Below, piece after piece: positions 38,986 to 60,250 of a stretch of DNA of 64,000 nucleotides (its first letter is position 1; every line of letters starts with the position of its first letter). Source of the DNA: Mytilus trossulus (Eukaryota). The position numbers were made by a program, and so were the translations under genes. Under the pieces are notes generated by a model. That model was not told where the DNA came from, did no database searches, and saw nothing but the letters and a program-made list of their open reading frames with translations. The DNA is taken from the NCBI RefSeq assembly GCF_036588685.1, contig NC_086376.1:79959630-80023629 (forward strand), in the 5' to 3' direction.

Positions 38986-41900
38986 TCACATAACATTACA
39001 TCCACGTCCTTTACGACTGCTTTTTCGATGTTTGCTTACGTAGTTGCCACTGATTGGCGAATGTTTGTCTCCTGCTGACGAAGACGGAGAAGGGGTTAAA
39101 CCAGGGATATATATATATGTCGACGTTTGCTCTGGAAAGATACATACAAGTGAAGTTAGATTATATTTCTAGATTAATAAATGGTGGTTATGTAAAAATT
39201 GACCTGTATTCAAAATTTCAGATAAAACGATTTGTTTTGCAAACTTAAACACTATAGTATAAACTTTCATGTGTGTTAATTATTTTGATATAAGTGAATA
39301 CTGCAACCTTTCTGGAAAATCTAAAACTGATAAATAAACGCTTGCTGTCATTGATATGATGAGAGAACACTTTTTAATTAGATGTTTTAATTGAAAAAAA
39401 ACATGCTTACTTTGTGTTGGATTGTTGTATTGTTTCCATTTGTCAGTTTCAGAGTTGTAAATATACTGTGGTATAATCGTATGGTCCTGTTCAAAGTTCC
39501 ACCAACTAAAGTTGAACTTTTTCTATAAAATAAATAAGAAAAGGTCAAAAATACTTAACGGAGCGGTACATTACAGACTCTTTCAAACGTAGTACTCTCA
39601 CATCTTTCTTACAATTCTGTCAACAAGTATTGATTCTTTTATTTTGCAAAAACAATCCAAACTGACAGTCACACAAAACTTCAAAACCCATAAAAATATG
39701 TTTGTATGACAACGTAAGGAAAGCTATGCAGTTACCGCCAGTTATTGTGTTAACACTTTTACTGTGTTTGTCTCACACAAAATAGAAGTAAATATTCTAC
39801 TATTATGTTTAAGACAAATTTTCAAAAATTCAACCTGTAATGAATGCTCAGTTGTTAAATGGACAGATGGTTCATTTCTGATTCCAGGTTTTATTTTATA
39901 TCACAGTCCTCTCTCCTATCTGTTTTCCCCTATTTTCTCTTCCCTCGTCCTACTTTCTTTCGGCAATCTTTTATTACCCTGTCCGTCCCTCATTTGAAAA
40001 AAAAAAAAATTTACCAAATAACTGGGCGTGTCCTCCACTTTACTTTCTTCTGATGGTTTCGTATTTTCCAGTTGTTTCATGAGAACTTCGGTTTCTTCTG
40101 TTAGTTTACCTTCTTGTTTTAATTCTTCAGTGAATGCCTCTAACTGTTCCTGGTTCGACTCCTTGTAACACACTGTAATATAAACACAACCAATAATCAA
40201 TAGAGTATTCCAACATTCCTCATTCATTCCATATTCTTGGGGAGGGGAAGAGAAAGATGGATTTTTCCGGATTGTATTTTCTTCTGTTGCAATGCATGCT
40301 TACTATTCCCTGCATTTTGTGATGCAAAATATTCATTCACATCCTGTTTCTGCAAGGTTATTTATATTCAGAATTAAATATGTTTTTTTTTAATCACAAT
40401 CCCTCTCCAGAAATCAATTGGTCGTTTCTGTTTCTTCATTTTTAACTTCACTGTGTACTTTTTGTTCCTTTTTCTGCAAGACTTTACCTTAATGTCGTAA
40501 CCCCTTTATATAATTTCGCTTCGTTAAATTGAAAACTCATTTGACTAGATATTATAGATGATTTCATCTTTATTCTGATAACTGATTGTTATATAAAATT
40601 GAGAATGGAAATGGGGAATGTGTCAAAGAGACAACAACCCGACCATAGAACAGACAACAGCAGAAGGTCACCAACAGGTCTGCAATGCAGCGAAAAATTC
40701 CCGAACCCGGAGGCGTCCTTCAGCTGGCCTTCCTGATATCAGAGTTCTCGAGTATTGTGGTCATATTTGCCTGTTACATTAACGAATAAATACCCGGACA
40801 ACAAATAGGGGTTGAGATTCTTACTAACGTCATCTCCCATACAATAATATCAAGATCAGTACAACATGATGAGATAAGGACAATGACAAGCAAAATCATA
40901 TACAACAATGATGGACATGTAAAAACACAAATAATTTAGCTAATAAATTCATTTGCGAACTTGTTTTTATGAATAAATTATCACAATTTATATAAAAACC
41001 ACAGCCAGACCATAGCCACGTTCAACGCAATAGCCCCATTCAATATATGCTCCCAGTAATGGCATGCATGCGCATGTTTAAATTTCACCCTAAAAGTATT
41101 CATACTAACAGAAAATAACATTGCAATGTATAATCATTTTAATGGTACGTACCTCCAAGAAACATTTCTGTAATTAAACTGAAGTTAGCTAATCTAAGAA
41201 GGCATCCGCCAGTACGGTCTGCTAACTCTTCATAAAACTTCTTGGCGTTTCCTTCTCCACTATTGCAAAATACACCATAAACCTAAAGAGATATGCATAA
41301 CACGTATTTTTAACGAAGAACTTTATTATTTCTGCTTATTTCGGTTGCTTTATCATAATTTTACCCAAAAGGACAAGCTTACATGAGATTCTATTTCTAT
41401 ATTTTCTGGTTTCTTTAGTCTGTACATTTTAATTGGTAATTCATTTGGTCAATGTTTTAATCCTTTTTATTTCAGGAAATATTAAAATCAACTTCACATT
41501 TACTATGTTCATCTGGCCCAAGACCACTTTGACATTTTGCTATCACTTTACATCCTTATCCAAAACTCTAGAACGAATTAAAAATACTTATGAGTAAAGC
41601 AGAGTTTTGCCTTCAACACGGTATCTTGAAAACTATAATATATAAGCAGTACAATGGTAGTCAAGGTAAGACATATTAGTACAGCAATTTCAATATGATC
41701 TCTATAATACATCTACTGTAGGAGTTATCGGTATAAAATAGAAAACAGCAATTATAAGGAACTGAAACATGGGGTCTGGGTTTTTTTAATGAACCTTTTA
41801 TCCCCGATTTTCAAACAAATTTTCAGTAGACACATTATTATCTGTTGAGTGATTCACGCTCCTTGTGGTTTCTAGTTTATATATCCAGATGTAGTCCTAG

Positions 41901-44900
41901 TTTGTTCTGGTAATGATACTAATCTGCCAATTTTCATATCACCCAATCACGTTTCTCGCACCCTAAGTATATGGACAAGAGTATAGTATATAATTGGCAT
42001 ACCTTAACTCCCATCCCCTTTAAGACATCTAGTTCTGTGTGCCAGTTGATGTTCTGGTCTGTATAAGATGGTGGATGTGGTTCGCAATCTCCAATAACTA
42101 CCAAAGCTTTGGCGGAATCTTCTGACCAGTCCAGCTGTTGAGCTTTGTGTAATGCCCACTCATAACACTGCAATAGAAAATATTATGGAATTGACAATTC
42201 ATTCCATTAAAACTGTTATATATATATTTTTTCGGGGGTGATGACGTGTGTTGATAAGTATGGAATGTTCGTTGGATAGGTCATCATCTTTGGGTTTCTT
42301 TTAACTTTTTTACCATACAATTTAAAATTGAACTTGAATGATTGAAGACTTCATGCAAGGTTTTCTTGAAATCATAAAGAGCTATTACAGCCAGCTTAAA
42401 GCTTAAACAACACATATGTTGCAAGGACAAACTGTTCGTTGTGTTAAAAACTTGTTATTTAGACTTCTTTTTTCGAGGGTTGCCTCATCACCAATCGTAT
42501 CACATCATCGTATCAAAGTGTTAATTTTACGTCTTATTTTTCAAACGCTCAACGCGAGATAACTCATTTTTAAACCACATTACCTCGGGTGAATCGCCTC
42601 CACCTGTTGATGGGGTACTGGAAGCAAAGTCAACCAGCTGTTGAACGTCTGTTGTTAGGTCCTGAATCTTGATGACGTAGTTATCATAATCACAATAATC
42701 ACCGTGGGCCATAATTCCAATTTTTATATTTGGTATGTCTCTTAAAAGCCGTTGACATGTTTCTTTTAATTTTGTCCTCACCTACAACCCGGATATTTTA
42801 TGATTACTAGTAATATAACAAGCAGAGAGAAATAATCACAAAATTAAGAATTTATTTTAAGGAATTCTAACTGATTTTATTATAGACTGTTAAATTTACT
42901 TTTGTTATGGACATGCTAAATTTTGCACATTTATTTTGAAACATTTGAATATTTTAATTGCAATAGCTGGTGTTAACATTTTTACATTTTACTGCAACAA
43001 TATAGAAATATTATTCGAATGTAGAAATACCATTTTATAAACCAACATTATTTTTTTTATTTGTCAACCCCATCCACCCCTAAAAAAAACAACTTATCTG
43101 ATCACATAAACTAAAGCAGCCTTACTTACACTCCCAAGATATTGACTCATGCTGCCAGTTGTGTCAAAACAAAACACAACTTCTACATTCTTTCCATTTG
43201 TCTCGAAACTTGAGAGGACGGCATCTTTCAAATCATCATCTATAGCTTTGGGATCTGTATCTTGAGCTGGGTCTAATAAAATAAAAATTAAATCAATAGA
43301 ATAAAATGAAAACAGGAACTTTGCTTCAAAGGTTCAGGGTTGATTTGTAAAACTTGTTAAACTGTGGTTTAATAAGAACATACACCAAACACCAGAACGT
43401 TAGTGTCTTCGTTTTTCCCATATCAAAATTAGTAGTCATGCTGCAGTTTATACTCTTAGGTAAATGCACTGGACAGTTATTAATGTGAATTTTACTTTTG
43501 CCACATATGGTCTAGATCTGCAACGGGGTGAACTGGATAAATCCCAACACAGTTTGTGGTTGCTCTAAGTTTGGTCTTCTGAAATTAATTGCTAAATCGC
43601 CTTTTTTACTTTTGACATAATTTGATAATCAATCAAACATTTTCTGCACGATAGGTCTAGCTCCAAACAACTCGAGTCTTGAAAAAACTATTTGAGTTTA
43701 TAACGGTCAACCATTTCTTAGATATGTCCCCCCTTTTTAAACTTGACAAAGGCATAGTTTAAGGTAAATAGAAGAAGCGAAATATAATTGTTAAATACAT
43801 AACAACCCTGACAGGTACAAGAAAAACAATAATTTTAAAATAACGTCTCAAATAGTGGTCGCAGTTACTGATGACAAGCTCATAGTATTAGAAAAAAACC
43901 GTCATGTCGATGAGAAATTACATTGTCCAACACTTGAATATCAACGACTGTAGTAAAACACGATCCCCCTTATAAAATCACGCCCAAATTTTATTCTTGT
44001 TTCAAATAACCAATCTTCTAACCCTGATCACAAGTCTACTAACCATATAATTCGCAAGTCTATCAACGAGTGTGCTAAAATACCCCTCCTTATAAAAATC
44101 ACACACAAACACCAAGTGCATAACTCTCGGTAATGACCTCTCTAGATTCGCTAGAGTGTTGGGATCAGTGGCGGACCCAGGGGAGAGTTCCAGGGGTTGG
44201 AACCCCCTTTTTTTTGACAATCAATGCATTCCGCCCCAGGGGATTAACTCCAACAAAGAGTAACAAGAAATAACTCCTACCTGATTCTGTTCAATCGTCT
44301 GCTTTGTCACCGAATGTCACTTGTATAAAGAGTAACAAGAAATAATTCCTACCTGATTCTGTTCTATCTTCTGCTTTGTCACCGAAAGTCACTTCTATAA
44401 CACTTTCCTCTCTAATACTTGTTTCATATAGTGGTGTGTTACATGGACGATAAACAGTGCCTGAGATTTTGAAGGACTGAAGAAAATATTTATAAAATTT
44501 GAAACTTTATAGTAGATTTTAATGTACAACTTAATAAATTGCATGTTTTGATTAATGTATTGTTTAAAAAAAATTATCCAATAGTAATTCTATCAACGAT
44601 AAAGTCACTTCATGAAAAAGTCAATTCCATTTGATTATATCAATGAAATAAGTCCATTACAATTTTACTTATGCTTATATCAATAATATTTTTCATAATA
44701 CCAGGCTTATAATTTGATACGCCAGATGCGCGTTTCGTCTTCATAAGAATTATCAGTGACGTTCAGATCTTTTAATACTTGTAAAGCCATACAAATACAA
44801 AGTTGAACAGCACTGAGGACCTTACAATAAGATTTTGTTTATTTTAGGGGTTAATAAAAATAAATTATTTGTCATGTTGTAGACATTATAATTTTCTATT

Positions 44901-45896
44901 TTTCCTGTTAAACTTTCATTCTGTAAATGGAAATAAATTATTGTCGTGTGTACACGTACCTTCACTGTTTTAGGAGAAACAATCTCTAGTCGTTCAACCA
45001 CAGATTTAAAATCTTCTAATGTACTAATGTTCTGTATATCCACTGGCGCGGAACCTCCTCCAACTACTTTAGCATACACTTTGATATCTCTTGGAATTAC
45101 GAACTGTGGATGAAATATAACGCATATATATTTGAAGATAACTTAAGGTTAATGTTGAAATGCTATATTGAAAAACGATAAGTGGCAAGGCAAATTACTT
45201 GCATTTGTTCGCAGTGCCAAATATAAAAGTATATTTAAAAGTGTTAACTCAAAGCGGTATATATGGGCTTTGCTCATTGTTATAAGCCATATGATGTCAT
45301 TTGGTCTCTTGTTGCAATTATACCCCATCTTCTGGTTTTCTATTAAATCCGTTACCAACAATATGTTTGTAAAATTTTTCATCGAAGAATGTCTCTTACC
45401 AAAGGTTACAGCTTTACCTTCACCAAAACAATATCTTGTTCAGGATGTCTTTGTATATATGTATACATATTTTTGGGGGTAAAATTTGCTGTGCTTTCCT
45501 GAGCCATTAAATTAATGAATTAATTAAAATATCAATGAATTTTTAGGTATAAAAACACAAAAAATGTAAATCTGCAAAAGAAATTAAATGTAATACATCC
45601 CACAATTAAGTGTATTCCTGTGAGCATATCAAATATAAACAAAAAATAAAAAAAGAATTACATATATATACCTCTGCTTTCAGTATAGTTTCTGGACAAA
45701 TTCCGAGGAATCCGATTGTTTTAGATTTATCAAGAAATTTTCCTTGGTACTTCACTCTTACTCTCCCGGGGATAATTTCTTCTTCTTTTGCAATCTGTTC
45801 AATAATTCTTTTTACTTGTTCCGTGGGTAATAATTTCAAAACTGAAGTACGACCTGTCGGTAATTTCACATAAACATCAACTAAAGGAGTTGCCAT
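38986..45896 (-). CDS. Di-ubiquitin-like + VWA (MIDAS) + polybasic CaaX protein, copy 1 (514 aa)
   Basis: Exons 45672-45896, 44960-45103, 44353-44476, 43130-43272, 42584-42781, 42003-42167, 41153-41282, 40015-40172, 39411-39522, 38986-39131; 1545 nt, all GT-AG, phases consistent. Ubl1 VYVKLPTGRT...YQGKFLDKSKTIGFLGI; Ubl2 VYAKVVGG...PLYETSIREESVIEV; VWA VVFCFDTTGSM / GGGDSPE / LVVIGD; C-terminus KHRKSSRKGRGCNVM*. Confidence 0.9.
44257..44400 (-). repeat. 72-bp tandem duplication of the exon-3 end and donor site
   Basis: aagagtaacaagaaataa(c/t)tcctacctgattctgttc...gtcactt(g/c)tata occurs twice; donors at 44351-44352 and 44279-44280. Confidence 0.9.
44697..44822 (-). mobile_element. Truncated family B copy with a degenerate hammerhead (44718-44764)
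   Basis: Minus strand: AACGUCA CUGAUAA UUC-UUAUGAA-GAC GAAA CGCGC AUC UGGCGU (G8A change). Confidence 0.7.
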
Positions 45897-46477
45897 TTTC
45901 TCAGTGATATTTAACCGTGTACTAAGGAATTATAGTGTATAATATATATTAAACTGAATACTTTGTTATACTAACTTGTTTATATACTATAGCGACTGAA
46001 AGATTTATTCTATATTTATTGTCCAATGAAATATCTCATAATAAAATCTTAAAATATCCTGTTCTATTATTAGACGATACGGTGTACAAAAATCGATTTG
46101 TTAGCATACTATTTATATTGATATTTTAGAATTAATTTTAAAATGGTAGGAGAATCAGTTTTTGTAAATACAAGCAAGGGCGGCCAAGTCGGAAAAGTAA
46201 ACCCTCCGCATTTAATTAGTATCCCAAAAGGAATGAGGGCCCGGGGTTTCAAATCGCAAGCACCTGTAGGTTAAACAAAAGTAGATACTGTAATGATTGT
46301 TAAGACGACGAAGTCTTCGGGATATAAATAAAAATTTCTATAACTATATATTTTATTATATGTATTTATAAAACAAATACTTTAACACAGACAAAGCCAA
46401 AACACACACACACACACACAGGCAAAATAATAATAAAAAAAACCACCATTAATTTGTTCATAGTACACGCATCATCA

Positions 46478-46750
46478 TGCCCCATCCGCACTATAATTTT
46501 CTATGTTCAGTGGATTGTGAAAATTGAATTTTAACTCTAATTTGGTATTAAAACTAGAAAGGTCATACATGTATCATAGGGAACATGCATGTGTAATAAG
46601 TTTCAAGTTGATTGTAGATTGAACTACTACTTCATGTAACACTACCCTGACCAAAAACTTTAACCAAAAACTTAAACCCGAAGCTAGACAGACGGGCGAA
46701 CAAACGGACGAACGAACGGACGCACAGACCGAAAAACATAATGCACCTAT
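46478..46750 (-). mobile_element. Family E element
   Basis: Reverse complement of 59290-59562, including the gacg/gaac microsatellite. Confidence 0.6.
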
Positions 46751-47099
46751 AAAGCGGAACAAAAACATTTAGAGATACCACTACATCTATCTGCAACTGT
46801 AATGCTTGAAATATTGGTCGCTAACCAACAGCCGACACTATTTAGGATTCCGATCTTTAACACGAATCTATTCCGGTAACAACGCGCCGTATTTACAAGT
46901 AGACATAAATTAATGACAATAAACATTACCATGGTCGACCACTCGTCAATAATAAGATCCCGTCGTGGGGAAAATTAGACATATATATGTCTATTCAGAC
47001 GTGGACCTAGAATTATAAAAACAATGGGGAGACGGTTACCAACATGGCGCGCGTCTAACGCATATATTTACTTTATTTCATCCTGGTATCTGAGTTACA

Positions 47100-49360
47100 C
47101 GAACAAAAGACATTAAAAGAGCTAAGAGATGTCAATAGGAAAAGATTACAAACACTGAGGAGATTAGAGAACCTTAGAAAGAACAGAAGGAAAGGAGCAA
47201 GAAAGGGATCACAATTTACTTTGTAAAGAAACTTCTAGGAGATAAAAGATCACGCCGGTGAGATTGCCCAAAAAATAGGTTGAACAATATTTGGGAGATA
47301 CTCGTAGTGATCTAGACAGAGAACAAGAGCTTGGAGACCAACATAAACTGATAGGTCCAGATGAGCCAACAGTAGAGTTTGATATGCAAAAAACCCAAAC
47401 TCCATTAAGTGATGTAAAATTTAAAGAGCAGCATCATCAACTGGACCAAACGGTCCATACAGAGTTTATAAGAACTGTCCAAACCTCGCAAAACATCTAT
47501 GGAGTCTTATCAAAGTTATAGGAGAAGAAATCGGTATCCAGATGAATGGTTACTTGAAATCAGATGGTTGTTTTATTCAAAAGGAGGAAGATTCTAAAGA
47601 GCTGAATTAGTTTAGGACCATATAACTTCGCAACGTTGAGGGAAAGGTTTGTCTTGCAATCTTGCTTTTGCGAAGCAGGTTACAACAATTATGCTTGAGA
47701 TCAACTATATCGACATCTCAGTACAGAAAGGAGGAGTACCAGGGTACCTCGAACATACAAGCGTTTTAAGAAAGTTTACCCAGGAAGCCAAGGAAAACAA
47801 AGGTGATTTGGCTGTCCTGTGGTTAGACCTGGCAATTGCTTACAAAAGTATTCCACACAAGCTAGTTGACGTAACCTTGGAGTACTATCACATACCTTGA
47901 AAGATTAGAGAAATGCTTCAGTACTAGTTTAACAACTTTATAATATGTTTTACAGTGACAGACTACACAACAGCATGGCAAAGGCTAGAAGGGGGAATCG
48001 TTACAGCATGTACCATATCAGTAGTTTTATTCTCAGCAGCAATAAAAATGCTAGTAAAATCAGCAGAGAAGATGAAAAGAGGGCCTGTAATGTCATCTGG
48101 GATAAGTCAGCCACCAACAAGAGCATTCATGGATGACATGACAATAACAGCAAAGTGTATGCTGCAAGATCTATGTGAGCTTATAGGCTGGGCACGTATG
48201 AAGTTCAAGACATCAAAGTCAAGGAGTGTGATATTAAAGAAAGAAAAGGTGCAGGACAGAAAGATTAGGATTGGAGGAGACATCATTCCAAAAATCATGG
48301 AGAAACCGGTCAAAAGCTTGGGCAAGTGGTTTAGAGACTCCTTGAACCACATAGAAAGCGTAGATGGGTGGTATCTCAGGCAGGAAATAGGATGGACATT
48401 ATTGACAAGTCTGGTTACCCTGGAAAGTACAAGGTGTGGTGCTACCAGCATGGAATATTACCAAGGATAACTATTGGTGTACGAAATATCTCTAACCAAA
48501 GTTGAAAGAGAGGATGTTCAACAGTTACAGAAATGGCCTGGGGTTCCAAAGAGTTTTAGCAGCATTGGCTTGTACAGCACCAGTTCAAAACTTCAACTAC
48601 CACTGTCTTCTATCACAGAGGAGTTTAAAGTCACCAAAACCAGACAAGACAGTAAAGATGACAAGGTGAAAGAGGCAAATGTTGATGTCATGAAAGGATG
48701 AAAATGGGTGGCCAAGAGCGCTGTTGAAAATGTAGAGAGCCGATTAAGACAGAGAGACATAGTGGGAGTGGTGACTTCAGGGCCACTTGTGTTTGGCAAC
48801 ATTCAGCAACCATTATGGCAGTCAGTAGATGCAAGACTTAAAAGTGAAAACTTGTTCATCAAGAAGTTCTTCGTGGAGAGGCGGATAGTCATCAAAAGAC
48901 ACATACAGCAAAGCCAGTGGTATTCTAGCAACAGCAAATGACTGGGAGATGCAAGCCGACGTTGAGTGAAAGACCACCTTCCCAAACGAGATTCTAATAA
49001 CAACCCTCCGACCAAACATTGTGCTAACAGTGCCAATGGAAATAAGACTGGATGAAGCCCATGAGAGAAAGCTTGCCGAGTACCAGGAATTGGTAACAGA
49101 CATCCAAGAGAAGAATTGGATGACATGGTATTTTCCAGTGGAGGTAGGCTGTAGAGGCTTTGTTTCTCAAGCATTGTGGAGAGCCTTAGGACTAACTGGA
49201 CCAGTCAGAAGAAGCTTGGTTGGAAAAGTTGGGAAACATGCTCGTTCCTGGCTGAGTCTGATCAACTCAGTCGGCGCACCCCTGGAGATTGTCGTGGACA
49301 ACGCCGAAACAGTCGAGGAGAGGTGATCCACCTGATGATGGAACCTGTTAAGCAGTGAAA
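47100..49360 (+). mobile_element. Decayed non-LTR retrotransposon, RT plus restriction-like endonuclease (Hero/R2-group-like)
   Basis: Fragmented ORFs contain QKGGVPG.LEH, LWLDLA.AY.SIPH, GIVT.CTISVVLF and AFMDDMTI (RT), then TLRP.IV, LTVPME.RLDEAHERKL..Y..L and FPVEVGCRGF (RLE); many stops and frameshifts. Confidence 0.88.
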
Positions 49361-49399
49361 AACATGGTATTTAAGGTATTGAAAAGTGAAAAATACGCA

Positions 49400-50190
49400 A
49401 CATCAAAATATTGATGTTGTCGTTATCTACAGTGGTCACAATTTTCTTAAATTTGGGTCAAAGGTCATAGCTAGATTTTAATGGAAAACGCATACTAACG
49501 TTAGACAGCTGCACTGCCGCATATATTCCTTTATAAGAAACCAAATTCTAATATCGGTAATAGGATGCCCAATTCTCATTTCACTGTTAAATAACGAGGG
49601 CCCTCATGGGTTTTTTTGATTATGTGATTACTTGGCCGTTTTTTTAATGATTATTTGATTATTAAGCCAAATATTTCATGATTATTTGATTACCTAGGAC
49701 TGTATTTTTAGTTTATGATTATTTGATTACTAAAGATAAGCAAATATTTAATGATTATGTGATTATATTGGCAAAAAAATGGTGATTATGTGATTACTAG
49801 GACCCCCCCCCCCCCCCCCCCCCCCATGAGGGGCCTCAATAACAGTGATCTTGACCTGCTAGAATTTCCAATTCGGATGTTTTACCTAAGATTCGATGCA
49901 AGTGATTCCGAGGTGTTTTCAAGATATTTACATTTATAAGTTGCTCTCCCAAAATGTTATAATTCTGTCTTTTGATAGAACGTGTCCATAATGAGTTTTG
50001 GGGGTAAATATCCAATTTCTTTTGCTGAGTGTGGAAGCACATACAATTGTAGTTAGTTTCAAAACTGTTATAATATTAATGCAGAATGCACTGAATAAGC
50101 AGATCTATATTTTTGCTGTATAGAATTAAGAAAGACTGCAAACGGTGAAGAAGAGAAGGGTTTCTGTTAAAGTATATATATATGAAAACA
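49400..50190 (+). repeat. Direct repeat, first copy (second copy about 51395-51960)
   Basis: Both copies share cagtggtcacaattttct...gggtcaaaggtcatagct, taggatgcccaatt and ttttgctgagtgtggaagcacat. Confidence 0.8.
49596..49837. mobile_element. 242-bp MITE with 15-bp TIRs and a 6-bp TSD (AATAAC)
   Basis: aataac|gagggccctcatggg ... cccatgaggggcctc|aataac; internal gattatttgatta repeats and a C23 tract; absent from the paralogous site near 51663. Confidence 0.9.
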
Positions 50191-50515
50191 AAATGACAAT
50201 TAGACACAGGTCAATCTTACACACTTATATGCCTAGTTATTAAACATAAATTGGCCTACAATTTATATATATATATTTATCGGTCGTCCCTCTGTCTATA
50301 TCACTCTGTTCAGCTCTTTATATTATTCCGTATCATGTCTTTGTGACGACAAATACGTTGACCCGGCCTTAATAACTTTGACCCGGACTTATCAGCGACG
50401 TCATAATGTTTGAACCGACGTTAATAACTTTGACCTGAACTTATCAAGTCATCTTTTGTGTGCTGGCGAAACAAAGCAAACACTTCCGAAACACGCAAAT
50501 ATAGCCCGATAAATT

Positions 50516-50676
50516 GATTATCAGATTATTTGCATATTGATATTGTAAAATATCAGCTGCTTGGCATTATATGAAGGCTTTTTGATCTCGTTCGCTACGC
50601 TCACTCGACAAAAAGCTTCATATCATGTCTCGCAGCTGATATTTTACGATATCAACATGCAGATAACCTGATAATC
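50516..50676. repeat. 161-bp hairpin / palindromic element end
   Basis: gattatcagattatttgcatattgatattgtaaaatatcagctgc pairs with gcagctgatattttacgatatcaacatgcagataacctgataatc. Confidence 0.8.
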
Positions 50677-52583
50677 GGTACATATAAAAGAGTGGTAAAC
50701 AGCAGCAATTTAATTAAGATATAGAACTCTAATTAAGTTATCGCTGAGCTCATATATACAAGCACGCAAAATAATGGAAATACTCACAACTTTTAATCAG
50801 ATTAAAATAACATAGAAAAAGTGCCGCAGCTAGCAGTAGCTGTTATATTCAACTGCCTACTGTTAAGTTGAAAGCCTATTGACACGGTTAGGTTAGAAAG
50901 CTTATTCAATTTTCGTTTTATAATCGAATTCGAACCAAGACACTTCATACTTTGTATATAGACCTATTTTGCAACGAATTTTTCGTCTGTCATTTAATCA
51001 TTATCCTTGACCTCATTGTCATGGTTAAGTGCCTGCTAAATAACGTTGATCGTCATGTGAATGTCTCACTTGTGAGATTTAATGTGCCTTTGGTATCTTT
51101 CACATCTCTTGTATCATGAGTTCTATGATAACTATGACTTGGTAATTAATTTATGGTATCATTGTAATGTCTACAAGGTTCACTAGTCCTCGACCTCATT
51201 TCGTGGAAAGTTGAAGAATGGTCGGTAACATAAATTTGGTTATGGAATGGTAGGGGGCACAGTCATCCACATAACATTAAAAAGAGGACTTGTAAAAATA
51301 GTAGGGTCAACGATTTTTTCCGATTTGGGTTAATTGAATAATACACTGATATATACTTAATAGGATTGAAAAGAGAAAAATAAGCCTCATCGAAATATTG
51401 ACGTCGTCGTTATCAACAGTGGTCACAATTTTCTGAAACTTGGGTCAAAGGTCATAGCTTAAATTTCAAGGAAAACGCAGTCCCCTTCGGATAGCTGACC
51501 GCCCCTTCATATATTTGCATATAGGAAAACAAATTCAAATAATTCAAAGGATTATAACTATAGTTTGTATAATAAGGACTAATTTGATATTTATGTTGCA
51601 AACTATGGCCAGTTAGAGATTAACATTTGTACTTGTAGGATGCCCAATTTTCATTCAGCTAACATAACAGTGATCTGTATCAAAATCCTCAAATACGAAG
51701 TTTTTACATGAGATTCGACACAAGTTGTCATCCCAAAATGTTATGTTTCCTCTTTTTATAGAAGGTGTTAGTAATGATTTTTGGGATCAATATCTATATA
51801 TTTTTTGCTGAGTGTGGAAGCACATGGAATTGTACTGGTGTAGTATTAATGCAGAATGGATTGAATTAACATGCATGTCTAAGTTTTATTTTGTTTAAAA
51901 ACATAAGAATGACTGCATACGTTGAATAAAGAGATGGTTTCAGTAGAATATTAGTCTTAGATGCATGATTTTTCATTAGTTGTTATTGGTTTTGAACTAC
52001 CTGTCGGTAGAGATGTATAAATACCCTTTCATGTTCAGTCTGTGATTTGATAAGTTTTGTTCTGCTTGATAAATATCTGATGAGTAAACCCCTTTCAATG
52101 ATTTGTTCTTCTATTGTACTATTACATAGCTGTCCCATGTAAAGGGAAGCGTTTGGTGCCAGCAAATCCGCCACATTCTGTATCCCCCTGTCCCAAGTAG
52201 AGACCGTAATTAGGTGGTTGTCCTTTGTTACTATAAATCATATTTGTTCTTCGTCCTTTGTTTTGTACACCAATCAGGCTGTTAGTTTTTTTAGTTTGAA
52301 ATGTTTTACATTTTTCTTTTCGTGACCTTTATATCTTACATATTGGTATGGTTTGGTTCATTGTTAAAGGCCGTACGATTACCTGTAGTTGTTAATTTTT
52401 GTGTCATATTGATTTTTTGGAGAGTCGTCCCATTAGTCATACCACATCTTTTTATTTTCACAGATGAAATAATAAAAAAAACCTAACCGTTCATGAGACA
52501 GAAACCAACAAAAGGACAAGAAGCAGATATTAGAATATGCAGGCAGAAAACTGAACTTTAAAAACGGGAAGATATGGAAGGTT

Positions 52584-52725
52584 CAGTGGTGGATCCAGAG
52601 GTGGTTCCGGGGGTTGAAACCCCCTTTTTTGATGATTTATGCATTTGAATGGGGAAATAAAGTTGAACATTCCCCCTCAATCCTGGATTAGGAAACCCCT
52701 CCTTTTAAAAATAGCTGGATCCGCA
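52584..52725. mobile_element. Short MITE with CAGTGGCGGATCC-type ends
   Basis: cagtggtggatccag ... ctggatccgc; a truncated relative lies at 44166-44235. Confidence 0.55.
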
Positions 52726-53128
52726 ATTTAAGTACATAACAAAAATTGCATGTATATTTTTCCATTTATTTGTTTATTAAGAACAAAATAATAAGTAACA
52801 AATATATGAATGAAAATTTCATTCTTTTATTCCACCCACTTCAACGAAAGTACATTATAATTATATGTGCCTGTCTCAGATCATTTGCACACTTGCTATA
52901 TCCAACAATGCAAATTCTGATACTCTCTCTTTTGTGTCATCTTCTTCCATGTAAATGCATGCTTTGGTATGTCATGTGACATATCGACATTGCTGCATAA
53001 TAGTCTTTTCTTTGGAGAGCTTAAAACGGCCTTGCTTGTTATTAAGGACACTGGTACCCGTCATTGCAGGTGCTGGCTATGGCTATCCTCTTCACTTAGT
53101 TTAAGTGTTTTATGACAAACTTCATTGT

Positions 53129-56100
53129 TCACATTACATTACATCCACGTCTTTTCTTGTGACGATCTCCCCTAAATAAGCTACACTCAATCATTGGCGA
53201 ATTTGTGTCGCTTGATGTCAAAGTCGAAGGAGGGACTGAAAAAAAAAGATATTGAATACATTAGAGAAGTTTGATATACTGACCCCTCTATGTGGATTTG
53301 TAAATGGTGGTGATGTAAACACTGACCTATGTTCAAAATTCCAGAAGTCGATTTCACAAAACAACTTACGACTTAGATTAATCGTAAGTATGCTGATTTG
53401 TTCATGACTTAAGACCAATCTTAGTCGTAAGTTTTTTTTGTGAATTTATATATACACTCTTCCTCCCTTATAAGAGAATGTATTAGATGTCGTAATTTTT
53501 TGTATAATTAAATACAAACATTAAAACAATGAAGGGAAAAGTTGAAACTGACCATGTAAATATTTCTATCATTGATATGATTAGATGTTTTTTTGAGAAA
53601 AAAATTCTTACTTTGTGTTGGATTGTTGTATTGTTTCCATTTGTCAGTTTCAGAGTTGTAACTATACTGTGGTGTTTTAGTATGGTCCTTTTTAAAGTTC
53701 CACCAATCAAATTTGTATTTTTTCTGAAAAATACAAAAAAGTAAACATTTCTTTTCAAGCAGATTGACATTACTTCGCCTTCTGTTTCAAAGAGATTGCC
53801 AAAACGCAGCGGTACTTCGCCGACTATTTAGAACAGATTGTCATTATGCAGCAGAACTCGCCGACTGTTCCAAAAATTCTGTCAACAAAATTTGAATTAT
53901 TTATTCAAAATCAAAATATGCTGACACGACACTTTTTCAGTTACCAACGAGTTACAAAATTTGCTACTAGTTTATATTAAATAAAAACATTAAACATGCT
54001 CAGTGGATGAATGAACGCATTCTCTTTTTCACCCGCTTTTCCCGATTTTCCAATTTCCAGTTTCAGTGTTACATCCATCCCTGATTAAAAAAAGATTTAC
54101 CAAGTAACTGGGAGTGCCCTTCGTTTTTCTTTCTTCTGATGGTTTCGTATTTTCCAGTTGTTTCATGAGGTCTTTGGTTTCTTCTGTTAGTTTACCTTCT
54201 AGTTTTAATTCTTCAGTGAATGCTTCCAACTGTTCCTGGTTCGACTCCTTGTAACACACTATAAAGGAGAGATAACCCATACAAAATACCCGTTGAAGTA
54301 TTTCGACGTTTGTCATTCTAAGGGGGCTAACATTTGTATTCTGGTTGGGGTAGTAGGATTCTTTTGGGATTGTCTTTTTATTTTCATTTATTGCTCCGCA
54401 TGCTAATTATTTTCTGCATTTTGTGTTTTTGTCAAATATGATTCAATGATTTACATATTTAAAAGCACAAATAATTTAAATGATTATATACTTTTAATAT
54501 ATATATATAATATATATATATAAACAAATGCACAGTCAGACCAGAGCCCCGTTCAATACTACTGCCATACAACATATTCCCCTGTCCTAGAATACATATG
54601 CATGTTAGTACTCGTTCATAAAGGCTTTTATAGCTACTAGTGAAAAACTCAGTTCAGTTGTTTAAATATTTTGATACGAATCAAATATCATTGTAATGTA
54701 TAATAATTTTAAAGTTATATACCTCCCAAAAACATTTCTGTAATTAAACTGAAATTGGCTAATCTAAGAAGACATCCACCGGTACGGTCTGCTAATTCTT
54801 CATAAAACTTCTCGGCATTTCCTTCTGCACTATTGCAAAATACACCATAAACCTAGGGAGATATGCATAATAGGTATTAAAGTATATTTATTTGTTCAGC
54901 TTTTTCAGTCGCTTAATCAGTCTTTTACTAGAAAAAAGAAGACATGTTTTCAGGAAAAATCTACTTGAATACTATTTTTCTGGCTCTTCAATCAGTCAAT
55001 TTTAATTGCTATTTGATAATTTTTCTTTCGGTCATCTTTATCTCAAGAAATAAGTAAAACTTCACATTTTAGCTCATTTGGCGGAATGCCATTTTGAGCT
55101 TTTACTATTACTTCATGTACGTCTCAGAAACGTATGAACCAGTCAAACAAAACTTCTCAATCTAATTAAGATATTGGACTCTGATTTTGTTATGATGTAG
55201 TATAACGAAATCAGAGATCAATATTTTTAATTAGATTGAAAAATTCTTATCCTTATAGTATCAGGATTCGATTTCGTAAATTTTATACCGGTACATCAAA
55301 ATACGATGCTGACTATATTAATGATAAAACATTAAGGGAAAATACATGTAAGTCTTTTGTATATTAAAAAACACAATATGTACAGGATCAGTTTAAAGTC
55401 CTTTTTTTTTTATAGAAGAAGTTTCACTGTTCACTGACATCGGCAACCTCTGCAACCGGTCGTGTTGCATCTCGTTATCATCGTCATTCCAGTAACCAGT
55501 CATCCAGTTTCATATTAGACAAGAGCAGAGTATCTTATTATCGTACCTTAACCCCCATCCCTTTTAAGACGTCTAGTTCTGTGTGCCAGTTGATGTTCTG
55601 ATCTGTATAAGATGGTGGATGTGGCTCATGGTCTCCGATTACAACCAAAGCTTTGGCCGAATCTTCTGACCAGTCCAGTTGTTGAGCTTTATGTAATGCC
55701 CACTCATAACACTGAAAAAGAAAATACAATGAACTTGATTTATTGGCCTAAATATTAATTCATCTTAAATGCTTGGTTAAACATTGTAAATTGGTGTTTG
55801 TTTATGTTGGTTTTTTTTCTTTTTCGGGAGGGGTGTTATGGCAAGTGTGGAATTTTCGTTGGTAAGGTCTCCAAAGTTTTTGTTTTCTTAAGACTTTAAG
55901 GCCCCAAAATGTTTAAATGAGTTTGCGATTGGGACAATACATAAAATATGCAAGTTTTAAAAAAAAATGATCAAGAGTTGCAACCAACTCGCATGTGTGA
56001 TCAATTATAGATATTTTGCAAAGACAAACTGTTAGTTGGCATCACATACTTGACCTTAGTCTTTGTTAGATAACTTTCTTCTCATACTTGTCCTTAGTCT

Positions 56101-59100
56101 TTGTTAGATAGATGTCTCATCAGCAATCGTACAACCTCTGATTTATTCTTCATGTTCTTACATGTTATCATAATTGTGTGAAATAATCTCGAGGTTACTT
56201 TTAATTTGATTTAAACATTCAAAGCGAGATAACTCGTTTTTAAAACCATTTAAGTACCTCTGGAGCATCGCCTCCACTAGTTGATGACGTACTAGAAGCA
56301 AAATCTACCAGCTGTTGAACGTCTGATGTCAGGTCCTGAATCTTGATGACGTAGTTTTCATAATCAAAATAATCACCGTGAGCCATAATTCCAATTTTTA
56401 TATTTGGTATGTCTCTTAAAAGTTTTTGACAAGTTTCTTTTAATTTTTTCCTCACCTACAACCCAAACATTTTATGAATTACAAAGAGAAAAGAAACAAT
56501 TTAAAAAAAAAAAAACACGAATTTATTTTATTTGGAGAGAGGTAAAAAAAAAAATTGGTCAAGAAAATGCTCAATTCTGTATTTTTTTTTTATAAATATG
56601 AAAATTGAAATTGAAATATCTGGCACAGAAATTTTTGACTCTTCAACGCAAAGCAACAATAAATAGAAAAAAATGTAGTCTGCAGAAATGCCATCGTTTT
56701 CTTACTTTCTCAAGATATGGACTCATACTACCAGTTGTGTCAAAGGAGAACACGACTTCTACATTCTTTCCATTCGTCTCGAAACTTGAGAGAACGGCAT
56801 CTTTCAAATCATCATCAATAGCTGTGTGATCTGTATATTTGATTTGAAAAAAAATATTCATAGAATAAATTAAAAGGGAAACGGGAATTTTGCTTCAAAC
56901 GTTCAGAGTTATTTTGAAACGCTGTTTTAAAAAATCATACACCAACCAACAGCACTTTACAAATAATGTATTGTCTCTTTTTTCTTATTAAAATTGTTTG
57001 TAATGTTTTTTTAATCATATTGGTAACTGCTATGGACAGGTTTTACCTGGATTATAATTTTGAGATGTTCTAGATTTGTAAAGGGATATGAACTGCAATA
57101 ATCCCAACATACTGTTTCTGTACCAAGTTTGGTTTTCTAAAGTTTACTTTCATCATGTTTTATTTACTCAAAGTAAAATGAATTGAATGCAAGTAAACCA
57201 TTTAATAATAAATAATGTCCGCTCCAGATTACAATATGATAAACAAAACAATGTAAATATCAGCATGTTATATTTCGAAATGAACAAAACTTTACCAGTC
57301 TAGGCTTTAAGAAGTCGAGTGTTGGTAGTAAGTGTGATCTGTTAAAATGGTCCAACAATTTGTGGTAGTGTTTAATTTTCATACACATCGATCGAATAAT
57401 TAACTTTTTACAGAATTTCATAATTTCATGCACTCTGATATGTCGAGCTCAAATCACCTCGTTTCTCGAAACCTAAAGCACTTGGAACAAGATCTGCTAA
57501 ACCTTCCGAGGCACATGATATCACACAGGGGTGTTTTGATAGGGTTCCTGTTGCAATCTATAGTTCCCTATCTATAGTGTGCCTTGTAAACAGTTGTTTG
57601 TCAGTTGGTCATTTTTCGTTTTATTTTTTCCTGTTTGTCGTTGTAAATAAAACTGAGAATGATAAGGAGGAATATTGTCATAGAGACAACCTAACCAAAG
57701 AGCAGAAAACAGCAGAAGGTCACCAATGGGTCTTCAGCACAGCGAGAAAATCCTGCACCCCGAAGCGTGCTTCAGCTGGCCCTAAACAAAAATGTGTACT
57801 AGTTCATCGATAAAAGTTTGTTTTCGATTGATGAGTTTATATGTCCCTATTATGCTATGTTTCGTTTCTTCTTTGGAAAAGTATGTAATTACAACTATGG
57901 ACAAAGAAAGATAACTCAAATTTTTAAAGATGACTTAACAACGACATCATTGATTACATGATTCCTGCACCTTACAAAGGTGATTTTACTTGACAAAATA
58001 GCACCCTTTTGTAATTTGAATATCTGAGCATATATTTCATTGATTAATTGCTGGAAATGTTCATGGATGGGGTGAATAGAATGTTATGGTCAATGCACTA
58101 TATTTAGTGTATCTCAAAATTAGTAATAAACCTTGGAAGATTTAGATATCAAGGTAGTAACATGGGGTTTTGGTTGTATTTCTGCAATCTTTACCCAAAA
58201 ATAATGATTTATAACATTATGTCACATAACGCTCTCGGTTAGTAAAAGCAAGCTCATAAAACTTTAAAACATGTCGGTCTCCCACCTCTAAAAAAAGCAC
58301 GCACACAGACACACATGTGCAAAACTAAACAAAGCAAAATAACACGGACTTTTTATTCTCGTTTCAGATCACAAGGCTGTAAACCATTCATGCTTTTCCT
58401 GGACTCGACACAAGTTTTGGGGTTTACTTAAACAAAGATTTACAAGAAATCATACCTACCAGTTTCTGTTCTGTCGTAGATAGTCACTTCTATAACACTT
58501 TCCTCTCTAATACTTGTTTCATATAGTGGTGTGTTACATGGACGATAAACAGTGCCGGAGCTTTGGAAGGACTGAAGAGTAAAAATAAATAAATTTGAAA
58601 GTTTAGTAAATTTTAATATTCATAACTTCATGGAATGCTTTTTTTTTAATACAAATTCATTTTAGTACATTGTTGAAAAGGATTCTATCAATGGAAGTCA
58701 ATTAATAATGGCTATATCGATTAGACTTTGTTCATTTTAGATTAAAAAAAAGAAAAAAGAAACTATTTGTAGAAATTATATTTTTTTCTACCCCTCCCCC
58801 TCCCTCCACCCCCCTCCTTTAAATTTTCTTTCATATTCTAGAATTGAAATGACACTTACTTGCACTATTTTTGGAGACACAATCTCTAGACGTTCAACAA
58901 CAGCAGATTTCAAATCCTCTAATGTACTAATGTTCTGTATATCTATAGGAGCTGAACCTCCTCCATCTACTTTAGCATAAACTTTGATATCTCTTGGAAT
59001 TACGAACTGTGAATGACATATTACGCACATATTTGAAAACAAACAAAACGTGTATGCTGTAACATAATCGGTGTGAAGAGCTAGGGCCAATTTTCAAATT

Positions 59101-60250
59101 AAATGTTGCACTCGTAAGGTCAAATATTGAATCATTTAAATCTTTAAAAGTCCGAAATGTAAACTTGAAACCGTTTTCTACTAGTTACGTATATCTGAGA
59201 ATATCTAGCTAGATTAAAACAGATACCAGTCTTACTCCGCGACATCACTATCATCTTCTCTATCTTTTTATTCAGCATTACAGATATTTCTATGCTCTTT
59301 TATGGGCATTATGTTTTTCTGGTCTGTGCGTTCGTTCGTTCGTTCATCTGTCCCGCTTCAGGTTAAAGTTTTTGGTCAAGGTATTTTTTTATGAAGTTGA
59401 AGTCCAATCAACTTGAAGCTTAGTATGTATACATGTTCCTTATGATACGATTTTTCTGATTTTAATACCAAATTAGAGTTTTTAACCCATTTTCACGGTC
59501 CACTAAACATAGAAAATGATACTGCAGATGGGGCATCCGTGTACTGGGGACACATTCTTGTAGATGTATCAACTACTTTTGTTGTAAAACTAGATGAATA
59601 AGAACAAAAACACATTAAATAATTGAATTTGATATTTATGATTTTTTTTAAATACAACACAAATTAAAAAAATCTGAATATCATAGTATGTAATTATTCA
59701 ATACGTTTAAATAAAGCGCCCGTGGAAAAAAAACATTTCACAAAAAGTAAAAACACAAAAATACTGAACTCCGAGGAAAATTCAAAAAGGAAAGTCCAAA
59801 ATCAAAAGGCAAAATCAAAAGTCCATACACATCAAACGAATGGATAACAACTGTTATATTCCTGACTTGGTACAGGCATTTTCTAATGTAGAAAATGGTG
59901 GATTGAACCTGGTTTTGTAGCTAGCTAAACCAGGCTCTCACTTTTATGACAGTCGCATCAAATTCCATTACATAGTCAACGCAAGCGACTGTGGAAAAAA
60001 AAACAAAAAAGAATAAGATATATACCTCTGCTTTCAGTATAGTTTCTGGACGAATTCCGAGAAATCCGATTGCTTTAGATTTATCAAGAAATTTTCCTTG
60101 GTACTTCACTCTTACTCTCCCGGGGATAATTTCTTCTTCTTTTGCAATCTGTTCAATAATTCTTTTTACTTGTTCCGTGGGTAATAATTTCAAAACTGAA
60201 GTACGACCTGTCGGTAATTTCACATAAACATCAATTAACGGAGTCGCCAT
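53129..60250 (-). CDS. Di-ubiquitin-like + VWA (MIDAS) + polybasic CaaX protein, copy 2 (492 aa)
   Basis: Exons 60026-60250, 58860-59006, 58460-58571, 56706-56830, 56258-56455, 55547-55711, 54723-54852, 54101-54258, 53612-53723, 53129-53235; 1479 nt, phases consistent. VVFSFDTTGSM, GGDAPECYEWAL, LVVIGD; C-terminus RHKKRRGCNVM*. Confidence 0.9.
53353..53444. mobile_element. Mini fold-back element in intron 9 of copy 2
   Basis: ttcacaaaacaacttacgacttagatt / aatcttagtcgtaagttttttttgtgaa; not present in the homologous intron of copy 1. Confidence 0.7.
55157..55239. repeat. 83-bp hairpin
   Basis: tcaatctaattaagatattggactctgattttgttat / ataacgaaatcagagatcaatatttttaattagattga. Confidence 0.75.
59290..59562 (+). 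mobile_element. Family E element in intron 1 of copy 2
   Basis: tttatgggcattatg...(gttc)n...ggggcatccgtgtactggggacacattcttg. Confidence 0.65.

Follow-up and report, generated by a model that had tools for sequence, protein, structure and literature searches.

The MUB/UBL3 proteins carry a single cytoplasmic ubiquitin-like (Ubl) fold without a conjugation tail and a C-terminal CaaX anchor, together about 120 aa. Two head-to-tail beta-grasp domains occur in linear di-ubiquitin, ISG15, FAT10 and OASL, and the hypervariable region of K-Ras4B is a disordered polybasic stretch followed by a CxxM box. Pairing of a Ubl with a von Willebrand factor type A (VWA) domain or its metal ion-dependent adhesion site (MIDAS) is known between separate proteins: the MIDAS of midasin binds the Ubl of Rsa4/Ytm1, and the VWA domain of Rpn10 binds FAT10. 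Here we analysed a 64,000-nucleotide stretch of the Mytilus trossulus genome (contig NC_086376.1, positions 79,959,630 to 80,023,629; the window, in which all positions below are given unless another locus is named). Two paralogous minus-strand genes lie within 38986-60250, spaced about 7 kb apart. Gene A (38986..45896) and gene B (53129..60250) each have 10 exons and encode 514 aa and 492 aa, respectively, in the order Ubl-Ubl-linker-VWA-extension-polybasic CaaX tail. The two genes are tandem paralogues and belong to a family of cytoplasmic proteins that is old and unstudied, with contigs of gene A as the evidence of transcription. Each of the domains is known, and the combination is without a studied member in the literature that we searched.

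Among the described systems, MUB/UBL3 is the nearest functional analogue, since it too combines a non-conjugating cytoplasmic Ubl with a CaaX anchor, but the mussel proteins have two Ubls and a VWA module in about 500 aa. The Pfam family of the MUB type (Rad60-SLD_2) had no match in the window exons and one weak match (0.0065, below the cut-off) in the relative P0016. The paired beta-grasps resemble those of linear di-ubiquitin, ISG15, FAT10 and OASL; unlike di-ubiquitin, ISG15 and FAT10, the mussel di-Ubl has no Gly-Gly end, is N-terminal in a larger protein, and joins Ubl1 to Ubl2 without ubiquitin's tail. The C-terminus is built like that of K-Ras4B, but the mussel proteins have no GTPase domain, which protist relatives do have. 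Copines (C2-C2-VWA) are similar in that a cytoplasmic VWA is recruited to membranes by a separate lipid-binding part. They differ in using calcium-dependent C2 binding instead of a lipid tail and in having no Ubl, and no C2 match was found by Pfam in the window exons or the relatives. The VWA/MIDAS-Ubl pairing of midasin with Rsa4/Ytm1 and of Rpn10 with FAT10 is found in trans, whereas a cis contact in the mussel proteins is unsupported, as set out below.

Nucleotide comparison of the gene A and gene B halves gave short collinear blocks of 72-92% identity with unalignable sequence between them. Such an alternation of collinear blocks and unalignable gaps is typical of conserved exons. In these blocks, open stretches of the minus strand carry the motifs DTTGS, GGD.PE and IGD. 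A word search showed that 24 public runs share 6-14% of the words of gene A, which is about the exon share of the gene. We aligned contigs from four public runs (three studies under one organism label and one under another) over 38986-44985. The RNA label of the runs was a guess, and transcription was judged from exon-only coverage by the contigs. The contigs covered eight blocks only, with zero coverage between them except at repeats, and at every contig joint the skipped segment has CT..AC ends on the plus strand, and so GT..AG ends in the direction of the gene. A single contig of 1915 nt spans exons 3 to 10 with an onward joint to exon 2; its 456 nt upstream of exon 3 agree in length with exon 2 (144), exon 1 (225) and 87 nt of untranslated region.

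The joint between exons 1 and 2 of gene A falls outside 38986-44985, the contig-covered stretch. It was obtained from enumeration of canonical sites, with the donor after 45672 and the acceptor before 45103, and yields a protein of 514 aa. A transcript-derived protein of a close relative (P0158) spans exons 1, 2, 3 and 4 without a break. The exon-by-exon translation of gene A is open and ends in CNVM and a stop. The joints of the gene A contigs place the Ubl exons in spliced transcripts together with the VWA and CaaX exons. The original prediction had proposed an intact 10-exon gene and had taken transcripts that fail to join the Ubl exons to the VWA exons as its refutation. The exon-only contigs, the GT..AG joints and the open 514-aa frame bear out the gene model, and the gene A contigs link Ubl, VWA and CaaX exons. 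A separate observation was made at 39523-40045, where run X4 only gave one contig with 4-10 mismatches per exon and a different joint with 28 extra letters. This contig probably comes from a transcript of gene B, or of an allele, that aligned to gene A because of their 92% similarity.

The N-terminal half of the gene A protein is encoded by three exons. Exon 1 (45672..45896, with the ATG at 45896 and a GT donor) encodes Ubl1 (aa 1-75), and alone matched Pfam ubiquitin (PF00240) at 2.7e-08 and 33.9 bits against a cut-off of 25.4. Exon 2 (44960..45103; joint 44476/44960, AG acceptor, open frame) encodes the first half of Ubl2, and exon 3 (44353..44476; joints 43272/44353 and 44476/44960) encodes the second half and the start of the acidic linker. 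The orthologues scored 30-81 bits with Pfam ubiquitin, and several had two ubiquitin stretches. Two public orthologues, P0157 and P0232, were used as folding stand-ins for the window proteins. The AlphaFold model is that of P0157 from Mytilus galloprovincialis (93% identical to exon 1) and was built with 55 orthologues. It showed two beta-grasps (1-76 and 81-155), with strands and a helix at 6-76 and 81-155 and a predicted local distance difference test score (pLDDT) of about 90. The top Foldseek matches for this N-terminal unit were linear di-ubiquitin, ISG15 and the tandem Ubl of OASL. About 150 columns were aligned in the matches of the di-ubiquitin type, with E values of 6e-13 to 1e-9. When solved structures were searched by sequence, the matches were ubiquitins only (polyubiquitin included), with no close VWA relative.

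Ubl1 ends in KAE and runs directly into Ubl2, which in turn runs into an acidic, disordered linker of about 30 residues (158-189 in the P0157 model). A Gly-Gly end is absent from both Ubls, and GG pairs occur only in a loop of Ubl2 and inside the VWA domain. Since there is no LRLRGG or Gly-Gly end, the di-Ubl is not a conjugatable modifier.

The VWA domain is encoded by the next four exons of gene A. Exon 4 (43130..43272; contig joints with the cut at +2, weak Pfam VWA_4 match) holds the acidic linker and the first VWA strand with MIDAS loop 1, DTTGS (aa 201-205, 43151..43165). Exon 5 (42584..42781) encodes the VWA core with AHGDY and TGGGDSPE, exon 6 (42003..42167) encodes VVIGD..PH with the MIDAS aspartate D305, and exon 7 (41153..41282) completes the domain; all three are delimited by RNA-contig joints. 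With exon 5 as the query, 665 proteins were found at E<=0.001. In the P0157 model the VWA domain spans 193-382. The best folds found by the structural aligner were integrin beta I-like domains, at Z 17.5-18.3 and a root-mean-square deviation of 2.6-2.7 with about 191 residues aligned, while TFIIH p44 gave Z 16.6-17.3. Over both groups the matches cover 175-202 residues at Z 16.6-18.3, but the identity is 12-20% only, the integrin domains are extracellular, and p44 lacks a MIDAS function. In our reading of the sequences, the metal loop of the form D-x-S/T-x-S-M is common to the mussel proteins and the beta integrins. Pfam VWA_4 scored 29.4 bits with P0157 against a cut-off of 27, and single window exons reached 17.2 bits, below the cut-off.

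DTTGS, GGD.PE and IGD are present in both genes, and in both the MIDAS loop reads D-x-T-x-S, with Thr replacing the first Ser. Among the 55 orthologues, D201 and M206 were conserved in all 55, T203 and S205 in 54 each, T/S271 and D305 likewise in 54, and D275 in 43. The MIDAS is complete, with Thr for the first Ser, and metal binding is predicted.

C-terminal to the VWA domain, exon 8 (40015..40172, contig joints) encodes the helical part of an extension and exon 9 (39411..39522, contig joints) its Trp-rich beta-hairpin. In the P0157 model the extension forms two helices at 384-412 followed by a small hairpin at 449-460. A short natural relative that consists of VWA and extension only was modelled as a single compact domain, with a predicted template modelling score (pTM) of 0.82 and a pLDDT of about 95 through the hairpin, so the extension belongs to the VWA module rather than forming a domain of its own. 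The best matches of this short relative were again VWA domains, at Z 17.5. A profile of the extension (residues 384-468) matched the segment immediately C-terminal to the VWA domain whatever the architecture of the relative, and the extension is followed directly by Ras, PARP or the tail in these relatives. The hairpin was not covered by any structural VWA match, and the helical/Trp-hairpin extension is particular to this VWA clade. A WWE identity of the Trp-rich part was considered and rejected: Pfam WWE gave only E 0.16, below the cut-off, and the 384-468 profile did not match the true WWE domains of P0121, P0040 and P0050.

Exon 10 of gene A (38986..39131; joint 39131/39411) encodes a disordered Ser/Pro-rich part, the polybasic tail, the CaaX box CNVM (38989..39000) and the stop; in the P0157 model the region from 471 on is disordered. 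Both genes end in CNVM and a stop after a run of Lys and Arg, with 6 K/R in the last 25 residues. A CaaX end preceded by 3-9 K/R in 16 residues was found in 43 of the 55 orthologues, mostly as CxxM, and the last residue is nearly always Met or Gln. The remaining 12 have basic tails, with 2-8 K/R in the 16-residue stretch that precedes the final four positions, and in most of these tails acidic residues are few or none. Several of the 12 may be read as amphipathic, which would be another possible route of membrane binding. Known farnesylated boxes include ones like CNVM, for example CNLM in Rnd2. Neither the A nor the B protein showed a signal peptide, a transmembrane segment or any hydrophobic stretch, the Kyte-Doolittle mean over 19 residues peaking at 1.51. 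In both genes the ATG is preceded, 36 nt upstream, by an in-frame stop.

The domain content given in the original prediction was largely recovered by these searches. The two integral Ubl folds without a diGly end are found again in the Pfam ubiquitin match and in the di-ubiquitin and ISG15 fold matches, and the beta-grasp fold, which was to be checked for both N-terminal domains, is present in the model of the orthologue P0157. The VWA domain with MIDAS-type residues agrees with the VWA fold matches and with ligand positions conserved in at least 54 of the 55 orthologues. The proposed helical and Trp-rich extension corresponds to the helices and hairpin of the P0157 model and belongs to the VWA module. 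The prenylation tail holds as a prediction, with CNVM in both genes and CaaX in 43 of the orthologues, and the hydrophobicity scan and the upstream stop agree with the claimed lack of a signal peptide.

The exon model of gene B is a projection of the gene A exons, and its splicing is predicted from homology. Exon 1 (60026..60250, GT donor) encodes Ubl1, and is followed by exon 2 (58860..59006) and by exon 3 (58460..58571), which has a shorter linker than that of gene A and was set by a choice of canonical sites that matches P0159. Exon 4 (56706..56830) carries DTTGS at 56727-56741. Exons 5 (56258..56455), 6 (55547..55711), 7 (54723..54852), 8 (54101..54258) and 9 (53612..53723) were, like exon 2, placed by homology projection with canonical sites, and exon 10 (53129..53235) encodes the tail, CNVM (53132-53143) and the stop. 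All nine introns have AG/GT ends, and the reading frame of 492 aa ends in CNVM and a stop. The frame stays open in 16 combinations of canonical sites (455-518 aa), and the 492-aa solution was picked to match the 493-aa Mytilus orthologue P0159 and the length proposed earlier. On these sites and this frame, the predicted second 10-exon gene is intact.

The A and B proteins are 86.8% identical, and the substitution rates (dN 0.079, dS 0.34, dN/dS 0.23) show that both genes are under purifying selection. Exon 1 (45672-45896 against 60026-60250) is 97.3% identical in nucleotides between the genes, and the other exons are 88-92% identical. This excess identity suggests an extra constraint on Ubl1 or a short tract of gene conversion.

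The best orthologues of gene A were P0157 (M. galloprovincialis, 512 aa) and P0156 (M. californianus), and that of gene B was P0159 (M. galloprovincialis, 493 aa), all at about 85% identity. The tails of A and B match those of the Mytilus orthologues copy for copy, and the tree groups the A-type with the B-type proteins in a single starred clade, apart from other bivalves. These two results place the duplication within the mussel lineage, before the split from Mytilus represented by the M. galloprovincialis copies.

The search across metazoans that had been suggested for the architecture showed the same domain order to be widespread in marine invertebrates: it was found in bivalves, gastropods, a chiton, the brachiopod Lingula, annelids, nemerteans, a bryozoan, echinoderms and hemichordates. 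The ESM Atlas held one cluster of 95 members, mostly molluscs. Vertebrates, insects and nematodes were not among the best 120 matches. All relatives have automatic names, which are "uncharacterized", "hypothetical" or a bare domain label ("Ubiquitin-like domain-containing protein", "von Willebrand factor type A"), and the window genes are already in the public annotation under such names. A literature search found no study of the Ubl-Ubl-VWA-CaaX family; the paper PMC8195603 treats bacterial vWA-MoxR systems and not this family. The earlier statement that no characterised protein joins the full architecture therefore stands, as only automatic names appeared among the matches and the literature search was empty.

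True homologues with an additional domain were found outside Bilateria. Many relatives, some of them amoebozoan (Pelomyxa, Stereomyxa and others) and some known from environmental transcriptomes, have a genuine Ras domain between the extension and the CaaX end (Pfam Ras 6e-58 in P0225 and 2.5e-39 in P0046). The amoebozoan proteins (e.g. Pelomyxa) and a probable sponge protein of the form Ubl-Ubl-VWA-Ras-CaaX are homologous to the oyster orthologue in both Ubls, the VWA and the extension, with 35-44% identity. They share the MIDAS with the mussel proteins and frequently the CxxM end, but have a Ras-family GTPase of about 160 aa before the tail; they are likewise unstudied. No Ras G domain was found by Pfam in the window genes or the bilaterian orthologues. 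The Ras-fused P0016 groups with the animal proteins in the tree, and Ras-fused forms lie on both sides of its deepest starred split. Because of this distribution, the simplest history is a Ras-fused ancestor with loss of the GTPase in Bilateria. The bilaterian form would then be a descendant of a Ubl-Ubl-VWA-Ras-CaaX protein that lost the GTPase domain and kept the lipid tail.

The VWA module with its extension also occurs with other partners, namely in BRCT-WWE-VWA, BRCT-VWA and SAM-VWA proteins and, in dictyostelids, in Ubl-VWA-EF-hand-WWE proteins. In the Mytilus proteins P0199, P0198 and P0256 the module is fused to a C-terminal PARP catalytic domain, which replaces the Ubls and the CaaX box; their module is 59-61% identical to the oyster orthologue P0008 and about 69% identical to the window genes. 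On another chromosome of this genome lies an intronless paralogue (L001:1241-2695, G000:C3:89450740-89452194) with an open reading frame (ORF) of 484 aa and two ubiquitin-family domains (4.5e-16). Its VWA-like region has lost the MIDAS, with the six positions reading NSITYD and only the last Asp kept, and its basic, Cys-containing tail ends in CGRP. This paralogue is possibly a retrogene that has changed in function. At least 12 further loci of the VWA clade were found in this genome at 25-48% identity, several of them as single open frames of 340-510 aa; they include a loose cluster on C10 (G000:C10:70546218-71824209), C1:74025464, C1:59090186 and C9:39703820.

On the best overall reading of these results, which we propose tentatively, at a probability of roughly 0.45, the proteins are adaptors with a farnesyl anchor that bind a partner in trans through the MIDAS. 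The farnesylated tail and the run of Lys and Arg would keep them at the cytoplasmic side of a membrane, in the way known from K-Ras4B. The MIDAS metal would bind an acidic side chain of a partner in trans, and this partner may be common to the whole VWA clade. On its flexible linker, the di-Ubl could be a permanent handle for ubiquitin receptors or E2 enzymes, in the manner of MUB/UBL3 and of shuttles with UBL domains. The protein would thereby bring a MIDAS-bound client and machinery of the ubiquitin system together at the membrane. Several points weigh against this adaptor. Farnesylation is predicted from sequence only, and CNVM is polar at position a1. Each binding step is drawn by analogy from K-Ras4B-type tails, integrin-type MIDAS and MUB or UBL-domain proteins, and the di-Ubl could serve otherwise, either as a degradation signal or as a beta-grasp of the Ras-association kind. 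The full-length P0157 model had a pTM of 0.56, at which the arrangement of the domains is not confidently predicted. The loss of the GTPase is a parsimony argument from an unrooted tree made by a quick method, and P0016 is probably from a calcareous sponge, an origin read off the pattern of its name. Moreover, the recurrent fusions of the VWA module with PARP, WWE and BRCT point to a link that the adaptor leaves unexplained.

The interpretation first given for this locus was an adaptor on the cytoplasmic leaflet whose MIDAS latches its own or a partner Ubl, possibly in immunity or proteostasis. In its self-latching form, an acidic residue of the Ubl would be bound by the MIDAS metal of the same chain, and opening would control activity. 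The fusion of Ubls and VWA in one chain, a complete MIDAS, the near-invariant acidic residues of Ubl1 (E39 in 50 and E69 in 52 of the 55 orthologues) and the trans precedents of midasin and Rpn10 all speak for it. However, of 102 members with the di-Ubl, 81 had all six MIDAS positions exact, as had 86 of the 99 that lack any Ubl, so the MIDAS is equally conserved when there is no Ubl to latch, and the intronless paralogue is the converse case in that it retains two Ubls with a destroyed MIDAS. It follows that MIDAS and di-Ubl are kept independently, which favours a ligand in trans. The VWA module is also partnered with PARP, BRCT-WWE and SAM, and the full-length model shows no confident packing of the domains. 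We consider a cis latch quite unlikely. The earlier interpretation thus keeps its architecture, its predicted anchoring and its uncharacterised status, and the contact of the MIDAS with its own Ubl is unsupported. That the genes are an annotation artefact or decaying functionless duplicates has a negligible probability; this reading was ruled out by the spliced transcripts and the dN/dS of 0.23, and it also conflicts with the open frames and with Mytilus orthologues of both copies that have matching tails.

Two further alternatives take their support from the domain fusions. The many relatives with a genuine Ras between extension and CaaX box, which lie to either side of the tree's main split, would fit a GTPase-less descendant that continues to act at the membrane together with a separate GTPase of the Ras family, with the beta-grasps as Ras-association domains or the VWA as an effector or regulator; Ras-binding domains do share the beta-grasp fold. 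Yet the Ubls match the ubiquitin family itself and not the Ras-association (RA) or Ras-binding domain (RBD) families, no GTPase partner was identified, and the Ras fusion may have supplied a membrane anchor only, so we regard this as unlikely. The PARP fusion in Mytilus, whose module is so close to P0008, and the relatives with BRCT-WWE-VWA, BRCT-VWA and Ubl-VWA-EF-hand-WWE suggest instead an ADP-ribosylation adaptor, in which VWA and extension would recognise a component or product of PARP signalling and couple it to ubiquitin-like signalling at membranes. This is very unlikely in our estimate, since PARP, WWE and BRCT domains are all absent from the two mussel genes, a WWE identity of the Trp-rich part is rejected because its profile misses the true WWE domains of the relatives, and co-occurrence of domains is only a hint. 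A bolder extension of the anchored adaptor, which we hold to be rather improbable, is a membrane signalling node. Here a farnesyl-anchored mimic of linear di-ubiquitin, coupled to a metal-dependent VWA sensor and derived from a Ras-fused ancestor of animals and amoebae, would, once the MIDAS has bound its ligand, seed assemblies of ubiquitin receptors (e.g. UBAN-type or proteasomal) at the membrane, possibly with a tie to PARP signalling. If such a node exists, the family would have gone undescribed because it was lost in vertebrates and common model invertebrates.

Repeated sequence was also observed in and around the genes. A dispersed repeat of about 140 bp lies at 40586-40745 in intron 8 of gene A, with a related copy at 57644-57781 in the intron between exons 3 and 4 of gene B. 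At a first look it had 1746 candidate copies in the genome, the best 40 at 92-96% identity, and its depth in RNA contigs was 5,000-100,000. An Rfam scan of 38000-61000 was empty, and no tRNA-like gene was found at 40.6 kb; the repeat looks like a young family of short interspersed nuclear elements or miniature inverted-repeat transposable elements. A second repeated element at 44154-44290 (intron 3 of gene A) and at about 52530-52680 had an RNA-contig depth of 50-500 with loose ends at 44180 and 44230, and a similar peptide-like ORF recurs downstream of the 3' end of gene B. Between the genes, at about 46500-49400 on the plus strand, the G+C content rises to 0.41 along a chain of broken ORFs (e.g. 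47955-48470 and 49021-49326). Pfam gave nothing at E<=0.01 for three ORFs of this stretch, which by eye looks like a decayed retrotransposon.

The Ubl, the VWA domain with its MIDAS, the polybasic tail and the CaaX box are each well understood, and here they stand in a fixed combination conserved from amoebae to echinoderms. The family is a testable case of ubiquitin-like surfaces placed on membranes without conjugation, and the domain fusions hint at a link of this VWA clade to signalling by Ras GTPases, PARP, WWE and BRCT proteins. With vertebrates, insects and nematodes absent among the best matches, the family would preserve a part of ancestral animal cell biology that can be seen only in marine invertebrates. 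Given its age and the domains to which it is fused, experiments on it seem worthwhile. For mussel genomics, two "uncharacterized" genes become members of a defined family with a stated hypothesis.

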